A stretch of DNA of 64,000 nucleotides, from assembly GCA_020184695.1 (NCBI GenBank), contig JAANOX010000069.1, positions 310,001 through 374,000 on the forward strand. The letters are read 5' to 3'. Shown here one piece after another: positions 9,908 to 24,227 of this stretch. The notes beneath the pieces are model-generated. The model worked only from the letters and a program-made list of their open reading frames with translations. It was not told where the DNA came from and ran no database searches. The position numbers and the translations under genes were made by a program. Source of the stretch: Histomonas meleagridis 2922-C6/04-290x. Lineage: Eukaryota > Protista > Parabasalia. Position 1 is the first letter of the stretch. Every line of letters begins with the position of its first letter.

Positions 9908-11832
9908 TTATATGTCAACTTTATTTATCGAATTATCTTCTTTAAAATCTTTAGCAAATGGATCTTCTTCAATATTTGTTCCTGTCATACCAACTAAATA
10001 AATATCTTCAGATTGATTTTCATGGAAACTTTCTGTTTGAACTACTTCATTATTGAATTTGTTACGCCTATGAATATATATTAATAAAACAATAATAATT
10101 GAAATAATAATAATTGCTATCAAAACTCCAATGATAATATAAATATATGATTTATCATTTTCGCTTTGTTCAGTATTTTGTAAAATTGTAAAGAAATCCG
10201 AATAAAATGTATAATGTGTTGAATATATTAATATTGTATATTCATAATAAATAAATTGACTTACAATATGCGTACATATGGAATTATAATGTGTATATAA
10301 AAGTGTGCTCTTTAAATAGTTCTTAATAATGATAATGTTTGTGTATTTGAATATGTTAGAGTTAATATAATAGAATATGAAATAGTTGTATCAAAATCAA
10401 GTGCTTCTGTATATGAATGTATATATGTATATGTATTTGATTTAGAGAACGTATTACTTTGAGAAATTATACTTGCTTGTGTAAATGTATTACTTTGAGA
10501 AAATACAATTGATTTAGTAAATGTGTTACTTTGAGAAAATGTACTTGACTTATCAAATGTATTACTTTGTGTAAATGTACTTGACTTATCAAATGTGTTA
10601 CTTTGTGTAAATGTACTTGACTTATCAAATGTATTACTTTGTGTAAATGTACTTGACTTATCAAATGTATTACTTTGTGTAAATGTACTTGACTTATCAA
10701 ATGTATTACTTTGTGTAAATGTACTTGACTTATCAAATGTGTTACTTTGCGAAAATACATTTGATTGTGTAAATGTAGCTGTTGGTGGAATACATCTATC
10801 AATATTAATTTTGCTAATTTTAAGGTCTCCAAATGATTCACTTGAATATGAAGATGTTACTATAACTGTTTCTGCTAAAACGTCTAGAAATGCAGACACC
10901 TCAATATATGGCTCACTTTCCCCGAAATAATATATACATTTAAGTTGAACACATGCGCGAAATGCTTGATCCATAATCGTTACAACATTTTCTGGAATAT
11001 AAACAGTTGTTAAACTTTTGCAAAAATAAAATGAAACATAACCTATTGATGTAATTGTATTTGGAAGCATTATTGAAACCATTTTACTACAGTTAAAAAA
11101 TGTATAATTTTGAATTTCAGGAATATTTCCATAAATTTCAACTGTTTCTAAATTACTACATAACTGAAATGCAGTACGCCCAAGTGATGTAGCAGATTTT
11201 GGAATTGTGAAATTTTCTAAACTTGAACATCGATTAAATCCATAATTACCAATTGTCTTTAATTTTTGACCAATAATAACGATCTCTAAATTAAAACAAT
11301 GCATAAATGAGCAATACGCAATAGTTTCAATATTTTCTCCAAGGTTAATAGTTGTTAAACTTGAACATCTACAAAATGAATAATCATCAACCGATGTTAT
11401 CGTGTTTGGAAGTAATATAGAATTCAATTTGCTACAATTATGAAATGTACCCATTGCAATTTGTGGAATGTTTCCATATATTTTAACTGTTTCTAAATTA
11501 ATGCATTTTCTAAATGCATATCTTCCAAGTGATTTAACTGAATTCGGAATTGTAATACTAATCAAACTTTTACATTGAGAAAATGCATAACTATCAATTA
11601 ATACAATTGTACCACTAAGTTGCAATGATAAAAGCGATTCCCATTGATAAAATGCGTAGGATGGTATTGTGGTGATTCCATTTGAAATAATAACATTTTC
11701 AGCAGTATGATATCTTTGTATTTCTTCCTGAAGAATTTGGTCTCCATTATCTATTATAAGTGTTTTTGTATTTTCATTCCATATGTAAGAAAATGTTTGT
11801 GTAATAAAAATGAAAAATATAAATGGAAACAA
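9908..11832 (-). CDS. BspA-like LRR surface protein with S/T repeat stalk, TM and cytoplasmic tail (one frameshift; ATG not intact)
   Basis: Signal-peptide-like N-terminus starting at TTG; about 12 TpLRR repeats; 12-aa repeats; TM and tail (9908-10123) in the -1 frame. Confidence 0.75.
10441..10790 (-). repeat. 36-bp coding tandem repeat (TFDKSSTFTQSN)n
   Basis: aaatgtattactttgtgtaaatgtacttgacttatc repeated about 5-6 times, with degenerate flanking copies. Confidence 0.9.
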
Positions 11833-11940: not shown

Positions 11941-12266
11941 TTATTATATATATCAAATTTAATAAAACTAATTTGGCTTAATTTTGTTATCATATTTTTT
12001 TAATGATCGATCTCAAAAATTTCAAAATGCTCATTTGGGCTAAAACAAAAGTTCAAATTTGAAATATAAATAGAAATGAACTAAAGTTCAAAAGCCGGCA
12101 ATACGATAGATCTCTTTTACTTCAACAACGGACTTATCGTGATGGTTTCATTCATAATTCAATACTTTACACATTGCCGACTTTCGTCGAAAATTAAAAT
12201 TGAATGTTATTCAGTTTTTTTTGAATAAATTCCAATTGCCTGTACTTCAGCGATGTGTACCATCTT

Positions 12267-12461
12267 GGGTACTCTCCAAGCAAAAGGGAAAATTTGAATA
12301 CCTTCCTCTCAAAAAGTGGAAATGCCTTTCAATTATGCGTGATTTTTTGAATAGCATTGAAAAATTTTCATTCAAAATATTTTTGTGAGAAAATATTCCT
12401 TCTCAAATTCGATTTCTATGTTCTACATTTTTTGACATAAAAATTTCTGAAAATTTATAAA
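12267..12461 (+). mobile_element. Solo 3'-end fragment of the Tc1-like element
   Basis: Near-identical reverse complement of 22876-23070. Confidence 0.75.
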
Positions 12462-14002
12462 TTGCCATTGTATTTTTTAAATAATTTTAAATTATTCGAT
12501 ATTTTCAATTTTAATATGACAAATATGCACTGACACGCAACATTCTCAGATATAATATATTTATCGAACTCAATATTTATAATGATAATATATATTAAAT
12601 TCGTTTCCGAAATTCGGTCATAGGTATACTGGGAAGATATAAGAACTAGCCATTAAAAATACATAATATATGCACATAATTGAGGATATTAATTAATATA
12701 AATATGAAATAATATTCATGATAAGTCAAGATAAATCATTTTTTTAAAAGTGACAAATATCACTTTTGTATGGTTTATTTTCGTCGGTGCGCCGATGGTA
12801 AACGATATGACCAATAGATGCAAGATAAATGAGCAATAAATAAACATATTTCTTGATCAATTCATTGCAAATAAAGTAAAAATTACCCAAAAATATCATT
12901 AATCATTATTTGAAATAAAAATATATGAGGAGGGGGGTGGGGGTAAAAAAAGAACGACCCTTTTATCTCGACTTCTATTCAATAAAAATTATTTTTAAAT
13001 TATATCATATTTAAATATTCATTATTAAATCTAAATATGTGAGCATTATGTTCATCATGTCCAAATGCAATTGTTTTCAATCATTAAATTTTCTTTATAG
13101 ACATTTAGAAATATTGCCAAATTGCATAATTATTGGTAGAGGAATGACATTAAATTCGATGAAGAAGTTATGTTTATATTAGATATTTTAAATATACTAT
13201 TAGTTATAAAACCAATTTGTTACACTATCTATTGCATAATGCGAAGAATTGAGAATTTTCACCTTATTTAGAATATTTATGTTCATTTTGATTAGTATTT
13301 GAAACTAATAATTTATCGTATTTCATAAAGAATATTGAAATATTATCAAGTTTTTTAAGCACAAAATATAATATCTTATATACTCAGTACCAAACAAATA
13401 AAGATCATGAAACTGGATTCTGCAATATATTTATTAATATATTACCACATATAAGTAAAAATGCAAACGAATTAGATAAATCGAGAATAATAATAAGAGT
13501 AATTAAAGATTACATTAATATTTTATTTATTTTTAATATCATAATTTAAATTCCATTGAAAACAAAAAATCGGAAGATATAATCAAGAATAAAAAAAATG
13601 TATATAAATATCTACAACAAAGAACAAATATAAAATATTATATAACGAGTTAAATATTACTAAAATACATCAGATAATGAGATAACTCATTATTATAATA
13701 ATTAATACAATGAACAACACATGTGTTGATAATTTAATTTATTATTGTTGATGATGCGAAATCATTTATTGTAAGTCAAAAAAAAAAAAAAAGATACAAC
13801 AATTTTATGCAACAAATTATTATCAAAAACCAATTTATCACTGAAATGATTCATTAATAAATTATGATTCATTATTGCATTAATGGAATAATCTTCTATT
13901 ATAATAATTCCAAGAACAGTGAAACTATGGCAATAACAATTCCTGTAATTGCACTTGGATGAAGCTTTGTACCATTACTATGGCTCAATGGGCATACATC
14001 GC

Positions 14003-15557
14003 TTATTTTGTTACCCTTGGTAACATTGATCTCTGCAAAAAGTGCTTTTTAGAATATTCATTTGTTACATAAATAGTTGGACTATCAAATGTTGTATTAT
14101 AACACGATGGTTCATTCTTACCATAGAAGCAAACAATTTCAAGACTCATGCATGAACTAAAAGCATAGTTATCTATCACATTAATGTTCTCTGGAATGAT
14201 AACTTTCTTAATGCTATTGCAATTGATAAATGCGCCTAATCCAATCGTTCTTACTGAGCTGGGAATATCAATACTAGAAATCAAAGAACAACCTTCAAAT
14301 GCATATTCTTGGATTGCTAATATGGTTTTTGGAATTACAACATCACCTGATTTTCCAGAAGGGCAAAATATTAATTTAGTAATATTTTTTTTTATATACA
14401 ATTCAGTCATTGTTATAATTGGAGTAATATACATTATTTAGTGAGATGGTTACAGATACTAAATTTGAAAAATTTTGAAATGCAAATAGACAAATTGAAA
14501 CCACTGAGTCTGGAATATTGACATTTGTGGAACAAACATCCATAAAACTGGAAGTCTTGTAATACTGTGATTGAATTGGGAATACTTAAATTTGTCAACA
14601 AAGAACAATTAATGAACGAAAAGACACCAATTGATTTTACAGAATTGGGGATATTTATATTTGTAATAAGAAAACAATCCTCAAATGCATAATCTTCAAT
14701 TAATTGAACAGAACTAGGAATATTAACAATACCTTCTACTGCTGATGGACATAATATTACTTTTGATATGTTTTTATCATAAACAATTCCATCATTATTA
14801 TAATTCGAATAGATTTCATTATTTTCAGAGATTTTAATTGCCTTTAATTTTGTGCATGCATCAAATGCAGATTCATTAATTAGGGAAACTGAAGAAGAAA
14901 TTTCAATTTGCTCTAAATTTAAACACCTATAAAACGCAAATTCTTGAATTTTTTCAACAGAATCTGGAATTATAACTTTTGTTATCTGCCTGCAATCAGA
15001 AAAAGAGGAATATCCTATTGATTTTACAGAATTGGGGATATTTATATTTGTAATAAGAAAACAATCCTCAAATGCATAATCTTCAATTAATTGAACAGAA
15101 CTAGGAATATTGACAATACCTTCTACTGCTGATGGACATAATATTACTTTTTGATATGTTTTTTTATCATAAACAATTCCATCATTATTATAATTCGAAT
15201 AGATTTCATTATTTTCAGAGATTTTTAATTGCCTTTAATTTTTGTGCATGCATCAAATGCAGATTCATTAATTAAGGAAATTGATATAGGAATAATAAGC
15301 TGGTCCATAGAACAACCATAAAATGCATAATCTTTAATCGTTGTAACAGATTCACCGATTACTACATTTGTTAATTTGCTCTGATTATAAAAAGCATGGC
15401 TATCAATCACAAATACATTGCTCCCAATTTGCAGTTTTGAAAAATGACCAATGGTTTCAATATCATCTCGTGTAATAGTTGAAACATTAAAGACTTTAAG
15501 AGTATCATTTTCGAGAATAAAGTTACAGCATGTGAAAATAGGAAGAAGGTAAAACAT
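14003..15557 (-). pseudogene. BspA-like LRR gene with an internal tandem duplication and frameshifts
   Basis: ORFs 15225-15557 (signal peptide + LRR) and 14003-14434 (LRR) are linked by LRR-coding sequence broken at homopolymers. Confidence 0.7.
14615..15285. repeat. ~390-bp period tandem duplication within BspA
   Basis: attgattttacagaattggggatatttatatttg... at about 14630 and 15017; copies differ mainly in A/T run lengths. Confidence 0.85.
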
Positions 15558-15606
15558 GTATAAAAATAAATGCCATCTTTGGCAAATTTAAAATTCAATT
15601 GTTCAA

Positions 15607-16003
15607 ATGTTTTTCTTGATCCCTATTATCATTGTTGCCAGACAATCAACAGAAAATAATGAGGGAAAACAGTGCTAAGCCAGGACTTTTAGTTAATGTT
15701 AAAGGAGATCTTGATTTCAACGAATTAATAGATCAAATCAGCAAAATAGTAGGTTTCTTGCTAACAGCAAAAAATGAAATTCCAACAAATGGAGGTGGTA
15801 GATTTATTACAGGTGTTGATTCCGGTAATGTTTATGCATTTTATTACCATCCGTCAAAGAGACACAGAGTTTCATGTAGACCAGGACATGGCCAAAGAAT
15901 TCAACCAAAAGATCCAGTATGGTTTGAGGCAAATGAATGGGCCTATGTTATTCTTAAATCAGCCTGGTATGGAGGTAATCGATGCTGGTATGATGATGAA
16001 TAA
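15607..16003 (+). CDS. Lactococcin-972-family bacteriocin-like secreted protein (1-nt frameshift near 15660)
   Basis: C-terminal GGGRFITGVDSGNVYAFYYHPSKRH...EWAYVILKSAWYGGNRCWY matches the family pattern GG.W..G.....V...YYH..K.H...WA......GN..YY. ATG 15607 gives MFFLIPIIIVA one frame off. Confidence 0.7.
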
Positions 16004-16400
16004 ATCTAGATTAAGTGTAAGAACTTCAATCGATTTATTTTAGTTTTTAATAATTAAATAATTTTTTTAAATATATTTTTAAAAAATTTTAATATTATTT
16101 AATATTATTAAATGATTATATAATGTTTTATGTTATTACCATATAATAATATAGACAATTAAAAATATATTATTCGATTTTTGATAAAAATGCCATTTTT
16201 TTGCTATGCCATTATAATCCAAAATTTCATCAAAATATTTGCATGTAGGAATATAACAGATTATTTTAAATTTTATATTGTTGATTTAAAACATTTGTTT
16301 TTTTCAGAATTATTCTAATATTGAATAAAAAATATTATTTTTGATATATTAATTATGGAATTGTATGAGAAAATAATATAATGATAGCCTAACATAAATT

Positions 16401-16920
16401 TATGTTATGTACATGCATAAAGCTTCATCAAATTTGTGTATTTTCACTTGTTTATTCATGCTTTTTCATATTATCAAATGTTTTATCATGTTCATTCATG
16501 TTGTTCTATCTTATCTTGTGCTTATTCATGTTTTTTCTCATTATAAAACTTTTTTCATATTATCTCATTTGTATTAATAATTTTTTATGTTTGTTCACAT
16601 AATTTCATATTTATTCGTGTTATATAATGTTTATAAATTAATTTTGAATGTTATCTCATGATTTTCTATGTTATCTCATGTTATATCATATTTATTAATG
16701 TTTTTTCATATTATCTCATGATTTAATATGTTGATTCATGTTTATTCATGTTTTCATTTTATCTGATATTTATTTATGCTTTTTATGTTATCTCATGTTT
16801 ATTCATGGATATTCATGATTTTTCTTGTCATAAAATGTTTATTTATTAATTTTAATATTATCTCATGTTTGATTTGTTGTTCATTGTTTATTTTCAATGT
16901 ATTATCTCCATGTTATTCAT
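16401..16920. repeat. Degenerate 10-bp-period minisatellite (TTATYTCATG-like)
   Basis: ttatctcatg attttctatg ttatctcatg ttatatcata tttattaatg ttttttcata ttatctcatg...; similar tracts near 21850-21990 and 22420-22560. Confidence 0.6.
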
Positions 16921-18795
16921 AATACATGTCATAATAACATATAGTGAAATTTTTTATATTTTTCTATGAATTGTGTGACATTTTACACTTAATAATTCCA
17001 TGAAAATCCATTTTGTTTATCAATATCAATAGATTTCAAGTTATAACATTCGTCAAATGAAGTTCCATCAATGAAAAATTACAGAATTAGATACTTATAC
17101 TGTTGTTAATGCACTTTGTTCATTAAAAAGAAAGTTCTTCTATTTCTTAAACAGTATCCCCTATAATTACTTATGTAAAATAATGATTAATAAATAGCAA
17201 TTAATATGTATAATAATTTATCATTTTGTTATGTTTCATTATGTTCTCTTCATTTGATTTTGGTTTATTATATATTGTATATAATAGAAAAAAGCAAATG
17301 AACAGGAAAACATATATATTTCATAAGAATATCAAATAACATATGAAAACACATTTGAACACCATAAATAACATAAGAATATGAATATTTACATTCGTAA
17401 ACATATTGACTATGTAATTTACAATATATTATGAGGCTTGTTTTTATTGTAAGCTTTGCCGAATAATAACCCAATTTTTTGGGCAAGAAAAATAAATTAT
17501 ATATAAATAAAACTATAATATGCTGATGCATTAAATGTCAATATACATATTCTACATAATAAGATAATATTTTAAAACTTTTTTCTTACTAACCAGAAAT
17601 TAGGGTATTTAGATCAATTTATATTTACCCCCTATTCATATATCAATAATATATATTTCGATTTTTATGAATATATAAATATCTTATTTTATCATAATAT
17701 AATTGAATTTATATAAAACACCTTAAAGTTAATATTTAATAACTTTCATACTTTAAATATAACATTAGACTTTCATTTGTTATAATATAAATAAAAAACT
17801 TCTTTCTAACTTTCATCAATATTTCTCAAAATTCATTTGAATGTTGTACCATTTCATTTCTTCTAACAACAGTTAATTTATATGGGATCAGCTTTCGAAC
17901 ATATTCCATATAGTACAAAGCATACTTGAAAACTTTTAAATATATTTTATGTATTGCCTAATATTTAAATAATATGTTTTTTGTACTTGCATATGAATAT
18001 TTTGGAAGGATCTATGTAAATGACTCAATTAAGTTACTGTCGTCCATTTCATTAGTATATCGGAATAAGTATGATAAATTCACTTTTTTTGCATTTTTTA
18101 CAAATCATTTTTAAATTTCTTATGCATATATAATTTTCTCTAACTAGATTATTTAATACTACATACATGATTTTATATTCTAAATAAATGAGGATGAGAT
18201 ATTTAATTATAAAATTGACATAAATTCAACCATGATTTTTCAAATTTTCTCAATGAAAATTTTTGGTCATCACCAAAATTTCAAACAAATTTTTCATTAT
18301 CAAATAAAAAGTTTAAAAAAACTTTAATTCTAGTTTATTAATACACACATCTTATATAATAAAAATAATATTATTCAAAATATTATTTATTCATTTGATG
18401 TAGAGATATGTGAGTCAATTAAAATTGACCCTCATATATTTTTTGATATATATTAAAATCCATTCATTCTATATTATGAAATTATATTATTAATTTTTTT
18501 ATGAGCTAAATGTCTAGATATCAATGATCATAATTTATTCGATTACAAATATATTTAAACAAATTATTTTTATAAAATTTAATTGGATTTAAATGAAATA
18601 TATTATATTTGATTTATTGAGCTATTTATGAAATATTATATGAATTAATTGATTTTGCTGATTATAATATTTTGATTATTATCGACTTAAACTAATAAAT
18701 TAATTTTTCTTTTTATGTATACGCTTTTATTTATTATTCATATTAATAATAATTCAATATTGTATGCATTATGCGTTTAATATTTATTTGTTATT

Positions 18796-19763
18796 ATGAA
18801 TTACAATCAGCCTCAACAATTATCTTTCCCGTTTATCGATAATACTCTCTCTTATTTTTGGCTTTTTACGAATGAAGACGCAGCTATTCAATTCGCATTA
18901 CAGAATGGAGTTATTTATAATCAAATGATGTGTGAAGAATGTAATTTCGATATGCAGATCTACAGAGATTCTTCAAAAGGATTTGGATACAAATGGATAT
19001 GCACAAGATGCCACAAATCAAAAAGTATTTTTATATGGAAGTATTTTTACTCAGCAAAAATATCACTTTCTAAGATTTTTTATTTATTATATTGTTGGGT
19101 ATATAAATATTCATGTAAAGATACTGCGAGAGAAGTAGGAGTGAGCAGAAACACAGTAACTTATTATTTTACTTTATTTAGAAATGCATGTGATGCATAT
19201 GTTTTATCTTTAGAAGGTCTTGTTGTTGGCGGTCCTGATAAAACTGTTCAAATAGATGAAACTTTAATGTGTCGAAGAAAATATAATGTTGGACGATGTT
19301 TAAATCAAAGTGTGGATCTTTGGGGGAATTTGTGTGGAAGATAGACAATTCTTTTTGTCTTGTTGTACCTGATCGAACAAGAGAAAACATTAGAAGAAGA
19401 AATTCGTAATAATATATTACCTGAAACAAAAATAATTTCTGAGTGCTGGAAAGCGTATGACTTTCCTGATGATGAGAATGATTACGAGCATGAAAATGTT
19501 AATCATTCATGTAATTTTTGTTGATCCTGAAACTAAAGCGCACACTCAAATGATAGAAAGACTTTGGAGGGAACTAAAAATTAATAAAAAGATATGAAGG
19601 AATCCCAGAAAATAAAGTCAATGAACATATATCAGAGTTCATGTGGAGATGGAATGTTATTCACAATAAGGATCAAATGTTTAGGGCCGCCGTTCAATTA
19701 ATTGCAGACACAAAGTTTACAAAAGTAATTGATTGCGATGAAGAAGAAGAAAAGTTGGAATAA
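18796..19763 (+). mobile_element. Merlin/ISXO2 (IS1595-like) transposase, frameshifted
   Basis: CxxC...CxxC finger; VGGPDKTVQIDETL..RRKYNVGR; VNHS.NF; HTQMIERLWRELK; several 1-nt frameshifts; second Asp position reads Glu (ISECW). Confidence 0.85.
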
Positions 19764-19878
19764 GTAAAAATTCATATCTTCGATTGTTATGATCATTTTT
19801 TATTTCTAGAAAATTGAGGATAGAAATATAAATGATATTTTATTATGTTATTTAAATATCGATTTGTGAAGATTTATG

Positions 19879-20368
19879 TTACAAATTTCGAAATTTCGAA
19901 AATTTAATTTTTGAAAAATATGTATATATTATCTTTATTTGATGACATATTTTATTATATTATTTAAATATTGATTTGTTTAAATTTTTTGTTACAAATT
20001 TCGAAATTTTGAAAATTTAATTTTTTAAAAATCTGTATATATTATCTTTATTTGATAACATATCTTGTTATATTGTTTAGATTTTGTTTTGTTTAAATTT
20101 TTTGTTACAAATTTCGAAATTTTTAAAAATTTAATTTTTTAAATATCTGTATATATTATCTTTATTTGATAACATATCTTGTTATATTGTTTAGATTTTG
20201 TTTTGTTTAAATTTTTTGTTACAAATTTCGAAATTTTGAAAATTTAATTTTTTAAAAATCTGTATATATTATCTTTATTTGATAACATATCTTGTTATAT
20301 TGTTTAGATTTTGTTTTGTTTAAATTTTTTGTTACAAATTTCGAAATTTTGAAAATTTAATTTTCGAA
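19879..20368. repeat. ~113-bp tandem repeat, about 4.3 copies
   Basis: ttacaaatttcgaaatttt... starts at 19879, 19992, 20105, 20219 and 20332. Confidence 0.9.
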
Positions 20369-22875
20369 AAAGATCGTCATTAATCAATCCTATATCGTGG
20401 TAAACCTTAATGTATTATATACACTTTAGTCCTATTAATTTTTTACATTAATTTGATGTCAAAAAAATCATATCAATTTTTAAAAATCAAATAAATTCAT
20501 TAATCTATCTCATTAATAAACATGACACATGTTAAAAAAACTTCGATAAAAATATTATTATATACATAAAAAATCGGATTTTTTAGGAATAATTAAATTT
20601 ATAAATTTTTCTGATTTCAGATTTCAATCACATTTCTCATGTTTAGTAATGTATACATATTTAATCACTCGAATTTTGTCCAACCAAACATATTGCAATC
20701 TTGAAAAAAAATATAATAATTTTCGGTAAAATGATGTTCATTCAATTATTGAATGATAATTCAATATTTATACAGAAAATTCTGCGTAAAAAGCAGTTAA
20801 TTCCAAACATTTATTCAAAAAGTGAACATTTTTTTTGAAGAATTAATTATTACACACATTCATTTATGAGCGATAATATTATTTTATCTGGTAAATTTTT
20901 TTCATTTTTTTGTATGAAAAATAGTGAAATAATCTATTCTATTTTTAAAAATGTTAGAATATTTTTTGAAATATAAATCTAATGAAATATATAATTTTTA
21001 ATGACAAAAATTGATATAATTTTAATTTGATAATAATCTTTTTTAAAATCTTACCAAAAACACGGGGATTCAACTTATTCAGAGTCTTATATGTACATGA
21101 ATGTATATCTTATAATATTTCTAAAGTTACCAAGAAAATAAGTGTATAAAGTTATTGTCATAATGCTAATTGATTTTATGGGAAATATGAATTTATCGAT
21201 CATTTTTTGATATGATTACAATTAGTTCATTTTTTAATCATAGTTATAATTAATAATCATTAATAAACAGTATATTAATCTTGAAATAGTTCAACATGAA
21301 AACATTTTTATTTTAGATCTTAAAAGTCTTCTTTGTAATTATAAATCACTTATATATATATATCCATTGAAATTTAACATTATTAAAGATTTTTATAGGT
21401 GATTTCACGAACCTTGATCCAGAAAATAATTGTAATTTACAATTTTCATAATTGTAGCATAAATATAATTTTCCGAAAAAATCATTTCTAAATATTTTAT
21501 AGTTTCCCCTCTATAATAATGAATGAAATCTACGCTCTCTTATATATTTTATTTCAAATTCATTAAGTACAATTACTTTTATTACATTTCGAGTTACTAC
21601 TATTTCTTATGCATAATATAAAGAATTTTTTTTTAAGTTAGGTATCATAATAATTCATATAATTATATTAAATTTATACATTTTGTTCATTGATAGATCA
21701 AGATAACTTAGAATATTTGAAAAATTTCATTATTTAAATCATAAGAGAGAGACTAAATTAAGGTAGAGAAGTCATAATTTATTATAATAAACAAATTAAT
21801 ATAATATTCATATTTAAAAATCATATATACTCACATTTATTAATTTAATTCATGCTATGTTATATTTGTTAATGGACATGTATATTAAGTGTTTTTCAAT
21901 GTTATCCCTATGTTAACTTTTTCCCCCAGTTCTTTATGTTATCTCAACTTTATTCATTTTTATTCTATATTTGATGATGCTATTTCATGCTTATCAAAAA
22001 TTATTAAAGGAATAAAATAAGCTAATAAAATTATAATTTTATATACAAATGTCATTAATAAATCTTGTTTTTATGAACACAGCCAAATAATAAATGTTGA
22101 AATACCTAATTCTCTTTATTACAATAGAATAACTTATTTTATAGAATATTATTACATGAAATTATAATACCAAAATCAGCGATGTCAATTTCTCCAAAAT
22201 ATTTTATCTCATATTGTATTATGTTCATATATGTTAAAACCATGCGATTTTTCGTGTTGTATTTCATTCGAATAATAGTAAGGAGGGATTTTAATTATTC
22301 TATTTATTCACAATAAAGTAAGGACACTTAGTTTGAATAAACTTTATACAGTATTGAATCGAAAATTACTTTAAATGAATTCAAATAATATTGTTATTTC
22401 ATTTGATCTATTATATCTTGTAGCTTATTCACTCATGATTCTTCATGTTTACTTATGTTAATTCAAATTCATTTGTGTTTGTATATATACCTACTCATGT
22501 TCATTAATGAATGCTATAGTTAATTCATGTTTATTTATTATTCTTTATGTTGTTTTTGAATAAAAATCTTGAGAATTGATTTTAAAATGAATAAATCTCA
22601 ATATTAACTGAATATAAATCAAAATTAATGAAACTTTTAATATATCATATAATTTTAATAAATGTGATAAAGATATTTTTCAACTATTTAATTTTAAGTG
22701 AAAATGATTATCTATAATAAAAAAAATTCGAATATTTTAATATTTAACAAAAAGCATTAATTATTATATATGTTTTTTGGTTTACAGATCAAAATTATGA
22801 ATGTGTACTGATTTATCAACAAAGCAATATTTTTTTGGTGGCGACCGTTCAAAGTAAAAATCTATTTGGTGACAT

Positions 22876-24227
22876 TTTATAAATTTTCAGAAATTTTTAT
22901 GTCAAAAAATGTAGAACATAGAAATCAAATTTGAGAAGGAATATTTTCTCACAAAAATATTATGAATGGGAATTTTTCAATGCTATTCAAAAAATCACGC
23001 ATAATTGAAAGGCATTTCCACTTTTTGAAAGGAAGGTATTCAAATTCTCCCATTAGGTTGGAGAGTACCCCATCTTGTTTTGCAATGATGTGCTTTTTTG
23101 TAGAAAATATTTTTTGCAATTTCATTTTATTTGTTCCCGATCTGTGTTCTCATCTTCATTAGAATTTCATCTTTATCTTTTGTCCAAGTAACATGTGCTT
23201 GATCAAGTTCGAAGTTTTCAATTTCTTTACAGAGATGAAGGTGCTCAGAGATTGATTGTCCATTAAATTTCAGACACAATTTCAACCTAGATTCAGAGGA
23301 CTCGCACAATTTATTGATAATGTCCATTGAAATCGAGTTACATGCAAATTCAAGTTCTTGAACCAATTCTTGCTTCGATTGAGGCTTTTTTATTAAAAAT
23401 GCTTTCAAAATTTTATACAATAGTTCTATAGGATTTAAATCAGGACTATTCGGGGGCCAATCTGGAATAATGTCACAATTTTGTTCTATGTGATCTAGGG
23501 TCTTCTGGCATGTGTGACATCTGGCACCATCCTGCATGAAAACCCAATTAAATGTGCCATGAATTTTGTCCGATTCATCATAAAAATTCAATTCTTCAAG
23601 ATTCTGAATATAACGATCAGAATCAATTGAACCCTCGACAATAAGAAGTTTTGACTTAAAATTGACACCAATAACCCCAAAAACCATTACAGATGATGGA
23701 AACTTTTGCTGGTCAACTGTAGAACTTGGCATGTGGTCACCCCTTCTCTTTCACATCCACCTTTTGTCCGACCCTAGGACAAATCGTGATCCATCGCTAA
23801 ACACGATTTTTGAAATTATATCAGATTGCTCATCAAGCATCTTTCGACAGAAAACAATTCTCTTATCAATTTGTTTTTGAGTGAGCAATTGCGTGTGGAG
23901 TGGAGGTCCAAAAACGAATCTATGTTTTAATCTCTCACGTCTGATGGTACTATCAGACAAACTTATGCCAAATTTTTGTTCTACTTCTTTCACCAATGAA
24001 GAATTCGTCAACGTAACATCCTGGAGAGTTCTCAAAGAAATATATTCAGAATTTCTTTGGGTAATTTTTGATGGTCGACCCATTTTTGTTTCAATATAAC
24101 TACCTGTTTCCTTAAAATGATTAATAGTTTTTTGAACTCTATGAGTTCCAACGGAATATTGGTGGGTGATCTCTTGGTATGTTTTTCCTTGAATAAATGC
24201 TTGTATGATTTTCATTTCTTTACTCAT
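22876..24227 (-). mobile_element. Tc1-like (DD34E) transposase with C-terminal Myb repeat; two nonsense codons
   Basis: FSDGSRF, VFMQDGARCH...WPPNSPDLNPIE (34 residues between D and E); in-frame TGA 23751-53 and TAA 23127-29 both at Trp positions; reading frame continues to TGA at about 23040. Confidence 0.85.

Follow-up and report, generated by a model that had tools for sequence, protein, structure and literature searches.

Genes of the lactococcin 972 type have been described in Trichomonas under the name AMP-Lcn972 (Mol Biol Evol 2025;42(11):msaf276; PMC12612818). For these homologues, the available data consist of the up-regulation of a single gene, observed in T. gallinae upon co-culture with E. 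coli, and of the growth defects of E. coli strains expressing the domain (PMC12612818). The same work gives AlphaFold overlays on 2lgn and two conserved histidines for AMP-Lcn972, reports several Trichomonas homologues without predicted signal peptide (Table 1) and names homologues in T. foetus, H. meleagridis and other metamonads (section 13); its Table S2 holds the H. meleagridis entries KAH0788655.1 and XP_067770210.1. These two accessions correspond, respectively, to the intact paralogues P0004 and P0001, which share a 90% cluster with the product encoded in the window, by which is meant the whole stretch of 64,000 nucleotides analysed here (~25% G+C). An accession search in the main texts of papers gave no match. 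The existence of a lactococcin-972-type gene in H. meleagridis is therefore already known, and, the protein cluster having been published in 2025, the main claim of an earlier note on this DNA, a lactococcin-972-like bacteriocin gene in a protist genome, is of little weight as a discovery. What is modestly new is the transposon context, which is absent from PMC12612818, as are the copy number of the Histomonas gene and its frame-shifted copies.

The AMP-Lcn972 proteins of T. vaginalis, T. gallinae and T. tenax resemble the Histomonas protein by their C-terminal Lac972 domain and by the two histidines, and some of the metamonad members possess a signal peptide, a putative one being present in the intact Histomonas copies; unlike these homologues, the window copy is interrupted by a single extra base. 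Lcn972 of Lactococcus (2LGN) and Formosin D (9HKJ) share the fold and the motif, which is read as YYHPSKRH in Histomonas and as YHHGSKTH in Lcn972, but their identity to the Histomonas domain is ~19% in the structural alignment. Moreover, bacterial Lcn972 is devoid of the ~45-residue helix-bearing linker found in the Histomonas protein. The bacterial operon form comprises linked immunity and ABC transporter genes, whereas no immunity or ABC transporter gene was found in the 10.8-kb unit carrying the Histomonas gene, where the only other genes recognised encode a BspA-type protein and a transposase. The host also differs, the Histomonas gene residing in a eukaryote, and lipid II binding by its product is putative. 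On the evidence presented below, the stretch under study is probably one copy of a multi-copy H. meleagridis gene of bacterial origin, which encodes a pre-protein of the Lcn972 family and is carried as a transposon passenger.

Membership of the lactococcin 972 family

The ORF of the window scored 23.4 bits (E 8.8e-5) with the Pfam model PF09683, whose cut-off is 22. The NCBIfam model TIGR01653, which is tuned to bacterial precursors, gave 14.6 bits on the same ORF, under its cut-off of 32.1. An exhaustive phmmer search yielded 28 representatives with E <= 1e-3. T. foetus TRFO_19861 (E 6.6e-12) and T. vaginalis TVAG_097990 (E 7.1e-6) are matches in trichomonads; the latter now carries the name 'bacteriocin (lactococcin 972) family'. 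Twenty-four of the representatives were aligned (alignment A1), and PF09683 matched 22 of them with a best E of 9.9e-16. Two histidines, H81 and H86, encoded on the plus strand of the window at 15848-15850 and 15863-15865, are invariant in this alignment. They belong to a motif of the general form YYHPxKxH.

A search against the PDB with the single sequence gave no useful match and the family profile was needed. The A1 profile was aligned with 2lgn over residues 1-64 of 66, that is the whole mature Lcn972 (E 1.2e-7), and with 9hkj (E 1.2e-4). In the AlphaFold2 model, the pLDDT is above 90 across residues 60-131, and Foldseek placed 9hkj (Formosin D) and 2lgn at ranks 1 and 2 of the PDB (TM 0.80 by target length, rmsd 2.4 A, 68 columns). 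The HMM check of the lactococcin-972-like assignment thus came out in its favour, both by the Pfam score and by the structure match to 2lgn, and the membership of the Histomonas gene in the lactococcin 972 family is solid at the levels of sequence, profile, predicted fold and genomic context.

Two further members deserve mention. P0005, a metagenomic protein of 701 aa, contains five tandem Lactococcin_972 domains (E 7.2e-28; L009:760-2865, ENA ERZ16268151 scaffold_2580). Its contig is eukaryote-like and its gene directly adjoins one for a glycoside hydrolase of family GH3, which is also part of the published trichomonad 'antibacterial toolkit'. P0024 (EukProt, Ammonia sp., MMETSP1384) is a family homologue from a foraminiferan transcriptome (E 3.2e-5): either the gene occurs in one more eukaryotic lineage or this data set contains a contaminant.

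Organization of the gene and of its surroundings

In the window, the gene extends from the ATG at 15607 to the TAA at 16001-16003, in agreement with the interval 15607-16003 proposed in the earlier note, and it is read in two overlapping ORFs of the plus strand. The short one (15607-15678, frame 1, 23 codons; MFFLIPIIIVARQSTENNEGKQC) has a signal-peptide-like N-terminus made of M, FFLIPIIIVA and a polar stretch, and it is closed by a stop codon at 15676-15678 that is met through the frame break of the window copy. The intact paralogue P0001 (131 aa) has the identical sequence in residues 1-19, and relatives in alignment A1 have similar short hydrophobic N-termini. The hydrophobic stretch of this putative signal peptide counts 10 residues, without charged n-region. 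Judged by eye, the signal peptide is in frame with the domain in four other copies of the gene (L001-L004) and out of frame in the window copy.

The long ORF (15659-16003, frame 2, closed by the TAA at 16001-16003) corresponds to the annotated 114-aa product P0002, found exactly on contig JAANOX010000069.1 of the Histomonas meleagridis assembly GCA_020184695.1; its alternative starts are the TTG at 15632 and the ATG at 15659. The NCBI protein GPJ56_008067 is 99% identical to its product. It encodes a conserved linker helix of the D-x-N-x-L-L-D-Q-I type (15716-15751, plus strand), defined by the A1 consensus and predicted as a helix by AlphaFold2 at residues 37-48 of P0001, followed by the Lactococcin_972 domain, a beta-sandwich delimited at 15791-15973 (plus strand) by Pfam, the profile and the model compared by Foldseek. 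The motifs first noticed by eye in this DNA are present in the long ORF as GGGRFITGVDSGNVYAFYYHPSKRH and WAYVILKSAWYGGNRCWY; the pattern then written for them was correct except for the spacing GV...V, which is wrong by one residue and should read GV....V. The product of the intact gene is a 131-aa pre-protein in which residues 1-11 are hydrophobic, a linker of ~45 residues comes next and a domain of ~70 residues forms the C-terminus. The linker between signal peptide and domain contains one strand and one helix, which are kept in relatives.

The gene had been placed between BspA and AT-rich DNA, and this position was verified: ORFs with leucine-rich repeats lie upstream (14003-15557) and the downstream DNA has 20% G+C. 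The upstream ORFs are pieces of a BspA-type leucine-rich-repeat gene on the minus strand (LRR_5, E 1e-15 to 4e-19), whose ATG at 15557 stands 49 bases from the Lcn972-like gene and points away from it. Larger pieces of this BspA-type gene are present in L012, and its breaks differ from copy to copy of the element described below. It also contains a direct repeat (14627-14984 versus 15014-15373, ~360 bp, 88% identical) that corresponds to LRR units. Another BspA-type LRR ORF, intact and of 506 aa, is located at 10312-11832 on the minus strand (LRR_5, E 1.8e-61), close to the transposon but beyond its left end.

Gene copies and the one-base frame break

Seven assembled copies of the gene and one copy on a Logan contig were compared. 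Four of them read through as the 131-aa pre-protein: L001/L012 (WSYJ..180), L003/L014 (WSYJ..60), L002/L013 (JAANOX..227) and L004 (Logan ERR15966324). In the window copy (JAANOX..69), a GGG run at 15663-15665 (plus strand) stands in place of the GG of the intact copies, and the extra base shifts the frame after codon 19. The one-base offset pointed out in the run 'gagggaaaac' is therefore real in the assembly, the intact paralogues having 'gaggaaaac', and intact P0001 reads ...ENNEENSAKPG at this site. L006/L015 and L007/L016, both on WSYJ..147, have an extra A where the window has its extra G, and 81 bases including the ATG are missing from L007. L008/L017 (JAANOX..205) keeps GG at the frame-break site and has T7 versus T5 after the ATG, as a result of which the annotators chose an upstream ATG (144 aa). 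The 337 bases from 15667 to 16003 are identical in all eight copies, and the extra G is the sole difference between the window and L004 or L001/L003 over ~800 bases. A spliceosomal intron joining both frames was considered and rejected since the GT..AG stretch is only 8 bases long and the intact paralogues are colinear.

Both assemblies were drafted with Flye from ONT reads and then improved with Illumina data. They represent two sub-lines of a single clone, and the assembly authors count only 2 Illumina-supported true indels between them. Homopolymer length nevertheless differs between the assemblies in two orthologous pairs, L013/L016, which have a common TSD and an Rpb1 neighbour, and L014/L017, which have common TCP1 and symplekin neighbours. 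Nearly all inter-copy indels are within homopolymers of at least 4 bases. Rpb1 itself is one ORF of 1411 aa in JAANOX010000227.1 (L013:1431-5721) versus two of 743 and 557 aa in WSYJ01000147.1 (L016:1387-5772), and this split gene indicates that some frame-shift errors persist in the assemblies. Because of the homopolymer disagreement between orthologs, the split Rpb1, the location of the indels, the intact Logan contig and the small number of true indels, the extra G of the window is read as a probable artefact; as judged from the assembled sequences, a leftover long-read assembly error or a polishing failure in repeated DNA appears somewhat more likely than a real pseudogene. Two observations count against an artefact: long-read errors do not usually fall in two-base runs such as the one that holds the extra base, and an extra base occurs at one and the same site in three loci (window, L006 and L007).

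A true pseudogene would imply that a real insertion severs the signal peptide in the window copy, that no secreted product is made from it and that the intact paralogues do the work. The GGG read in the assembly, the two other loci altered at the same position, one of them also without its ATG, and the fact that the transposase and the BspA-type gene of the window are broken too are all compatible with this situation. It is nonetheless the less probable one, without being far-fetched, for the 337 bases following the site have remained identical in all eight copies, and the disagreement in homopolymer length between orthologous loci of sister strains, with the essential Rpb1 split in one of them, points to assembly errors.

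The annotated 114-aa protein could also be taken at face value, as a real cytosolic product starting at ATG 15659 and devoid of signal peptide. It is so annotated by NCBI at three loci, and the absence of a predicted signal peptide from several Trichomonas homologues (PMC12612818) would go along with it. Such a product is very improbable: ATG 15659 is in frame with the domain because of the frame shift and is out of frame in the intact copies, so that it becomes a start through the shift alone; ATG 15607 is met first in translation; and the eukaryotic cytosol offers no target to a lipid II binder. The annotated 114-aa forms rather look like products of homopolymer errors in the repeated DNA of two ONT-based assemblies, and such annotation artefacts matter to anyone counting or expressing Lcn972-like genes.

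A Merlin/IS1595-type transposon carries the gene

The gene is enclosed in a DNA transposon of the Merlin/IS1595 type, 10.8 kb long (12268-23069), which was delimited by its 96-99% identity with L012-L017 and by its sharp ends, the identity stopping outside 12268-23069. Its left terminal inverted repeat of 194 bp (12268-12461; terminus GGTACTCTCC) and the right one, also of 194 bp (22876-23069), are 95.4% identical when one of them is reverse-complemented. The element is bordered by a perfect 8-bp target-site duplication, CCATCTTG, with its left copy at 12260-12267 and its right copy at 23070-23077. The duplication is TTCTTTTT at L013/L016 and GAAATGAA at L015, and none was seen at L012 and L014/L017. 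A perfect 8-bp duplication in three of five loci is not due to chance and indicates that the whole 10.8-kb unit transposed with the gene inside. The unit is present at at least 5 loci, at some of which it stands beside housekeeping genes.

The transposase gene of the IS1595/Merlin DDE type is found at 18805-19733 on the plus strand. In the window it is broken into three frames, and tblastn with P0057 covers residues 2-310; the Pfam analysis of its 182-aa and 214-aa pieces gave weak HTH matches only. The transposase of L016, on the other hand, is an intact ORF of 322 aa in which PF12762 (DDE_Tnp_IS1595) is recognised at E 1.2e-16, and the relatives of this enzyme, of ~315 aa and up to 81% identical (P0057), also contain PF12762. 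The PF12762 family, the terminal inverted repeats and the 8-bp duplications together fit the Merlin superfamily (IS1595/IS1016-like DDE), with which the Histomonas element has these three features in common. It differs from Merlin elements by its length of 10.8 kb, far above the need of a transposase gene of ~1 kb, by its inverted repeats of 194 bp and by its two passenger genes. A literature search on Histomonas and Merlin transposons brought up no report of the 10.8-kb element.

A tandem array is present inside the transposon, 3' of the transposase gene (19873-20371), and consists of 4.4 copies of an AT-rich unit of 113 bp with a 95% match. Beyond the right end of the element, a Tc1/mariner-type transposase was detected on the minus strand, with HTH_Tnp_Tc3_2/HTH_32 at 23751-24227 and DDE_3 at 23127-23732. 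These DDE_3 and HTH ORFs (23127-24227) were rejected as the transposase of the element, outside of which they lie. They begin 57 bases past its right end, so the insertion site of the 10.8-kb element was probably within another transposon or adjacent to one.

The gene is resident in the Histomonas genome

A bacterial contaminant or a chimeric assembly join would account for the bacterial affinity of the domain, and nothing more than this affinity speaks for it. Its composition is that of the host: the GC3 of the Lcn972-like ORF, 0.21, equals that of the adjacent BspA ORFs. The gene is enclosed by terminal inverted repeats and target-site duplications, and the unit carrying it occurs in both assemblies as well as in an independent Logan contig, some other copies adjoining the Rpb1, TCP1/Cpn60 and symplekin genes. 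Close metagenomic relatives are located on contigs with the eukaryotic genes BBS1, a PCI-domain proteasome subunit and UCH. The contaminant or chimeric explanation is thus refuted and retains practically no probability. The earlier note had argued that the contig is no contaminant, and the host-like GC3, the repeats and duplications, the occurrence at at least 5 loci and the two assemblies agree with it.

Origin and possible function

A bacterial origin of the gene is supported by the family make-up and the published tree (PMC12612818), but the gene is old and fully host-adapted, and relatives are found in Tritrichomonas, Trichomonas and other metamonads. A lateral origin and an effector directed against the microbiota had been put forward for the window gene from its sequence, and both ideas match the published trichomonad analysis (PMC12612818), secretion and activity being deduced. 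By analogy with the biology of Lcn972 (PMC12612818), the pre-protein would be secreted or delivered to phagosomes, and its beta-sandwich may bind lipid II. Wall and septum synthesis would then be blocked in the bacteria that the parasite lives among and eats. In Histomonas, the gene travels with the BspA-type gene, both being passengers of the Merlin/IS1595-type transposon. We infer an antibacterial function for the Histomonas protein; H. meleagridis depends on gut bacteria, which makes this protein a reasonable candidate for handling them.

The domain might instead be kept only as selfish transposon cargo, or play a role other than antibacterial, in which case the copy number would reflect transposition and not selection. 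All copies are indeed within one transposon family and are identical, so that no selection signal can be read from them. Expression data, to which the earlier note had looked for a check, brought no help to the antibacterial reading: no RNA run of H. meleagridis was listed as containing the gene. However, the family is conserved over distant metamonads with its invariant histidines and its conserved linker helix, and bacteria trigger the expression of one of the T. gallinae homologues (PMC12612818), which makes these alternatives rather unlikely.

Returning to a gene with an antibacterial role, the transposon context leads to a broader proposal, towards which the balance leans slightly: a Merlin-type transposon may have captured the antibacterial gene of bacterial origin together with the BspA-type gene and copied the pair as a unit to at least 5 loci, and it could spread the cassette between parabasalids. 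No paper reporting the capture of such a pair of antibacterial and BspA genes by a Merlin-type element in Histomonas was found. The Merlin-type transposon explains the spread of the gene in Histomonas and offers a neat case of a DNA transposon with a laterally acquired antibacterial cargo. If the proposal is true, a cassette directed at the microbiota would be carried, and its dosage increased, by a eukaryotic cut-and-paste element.
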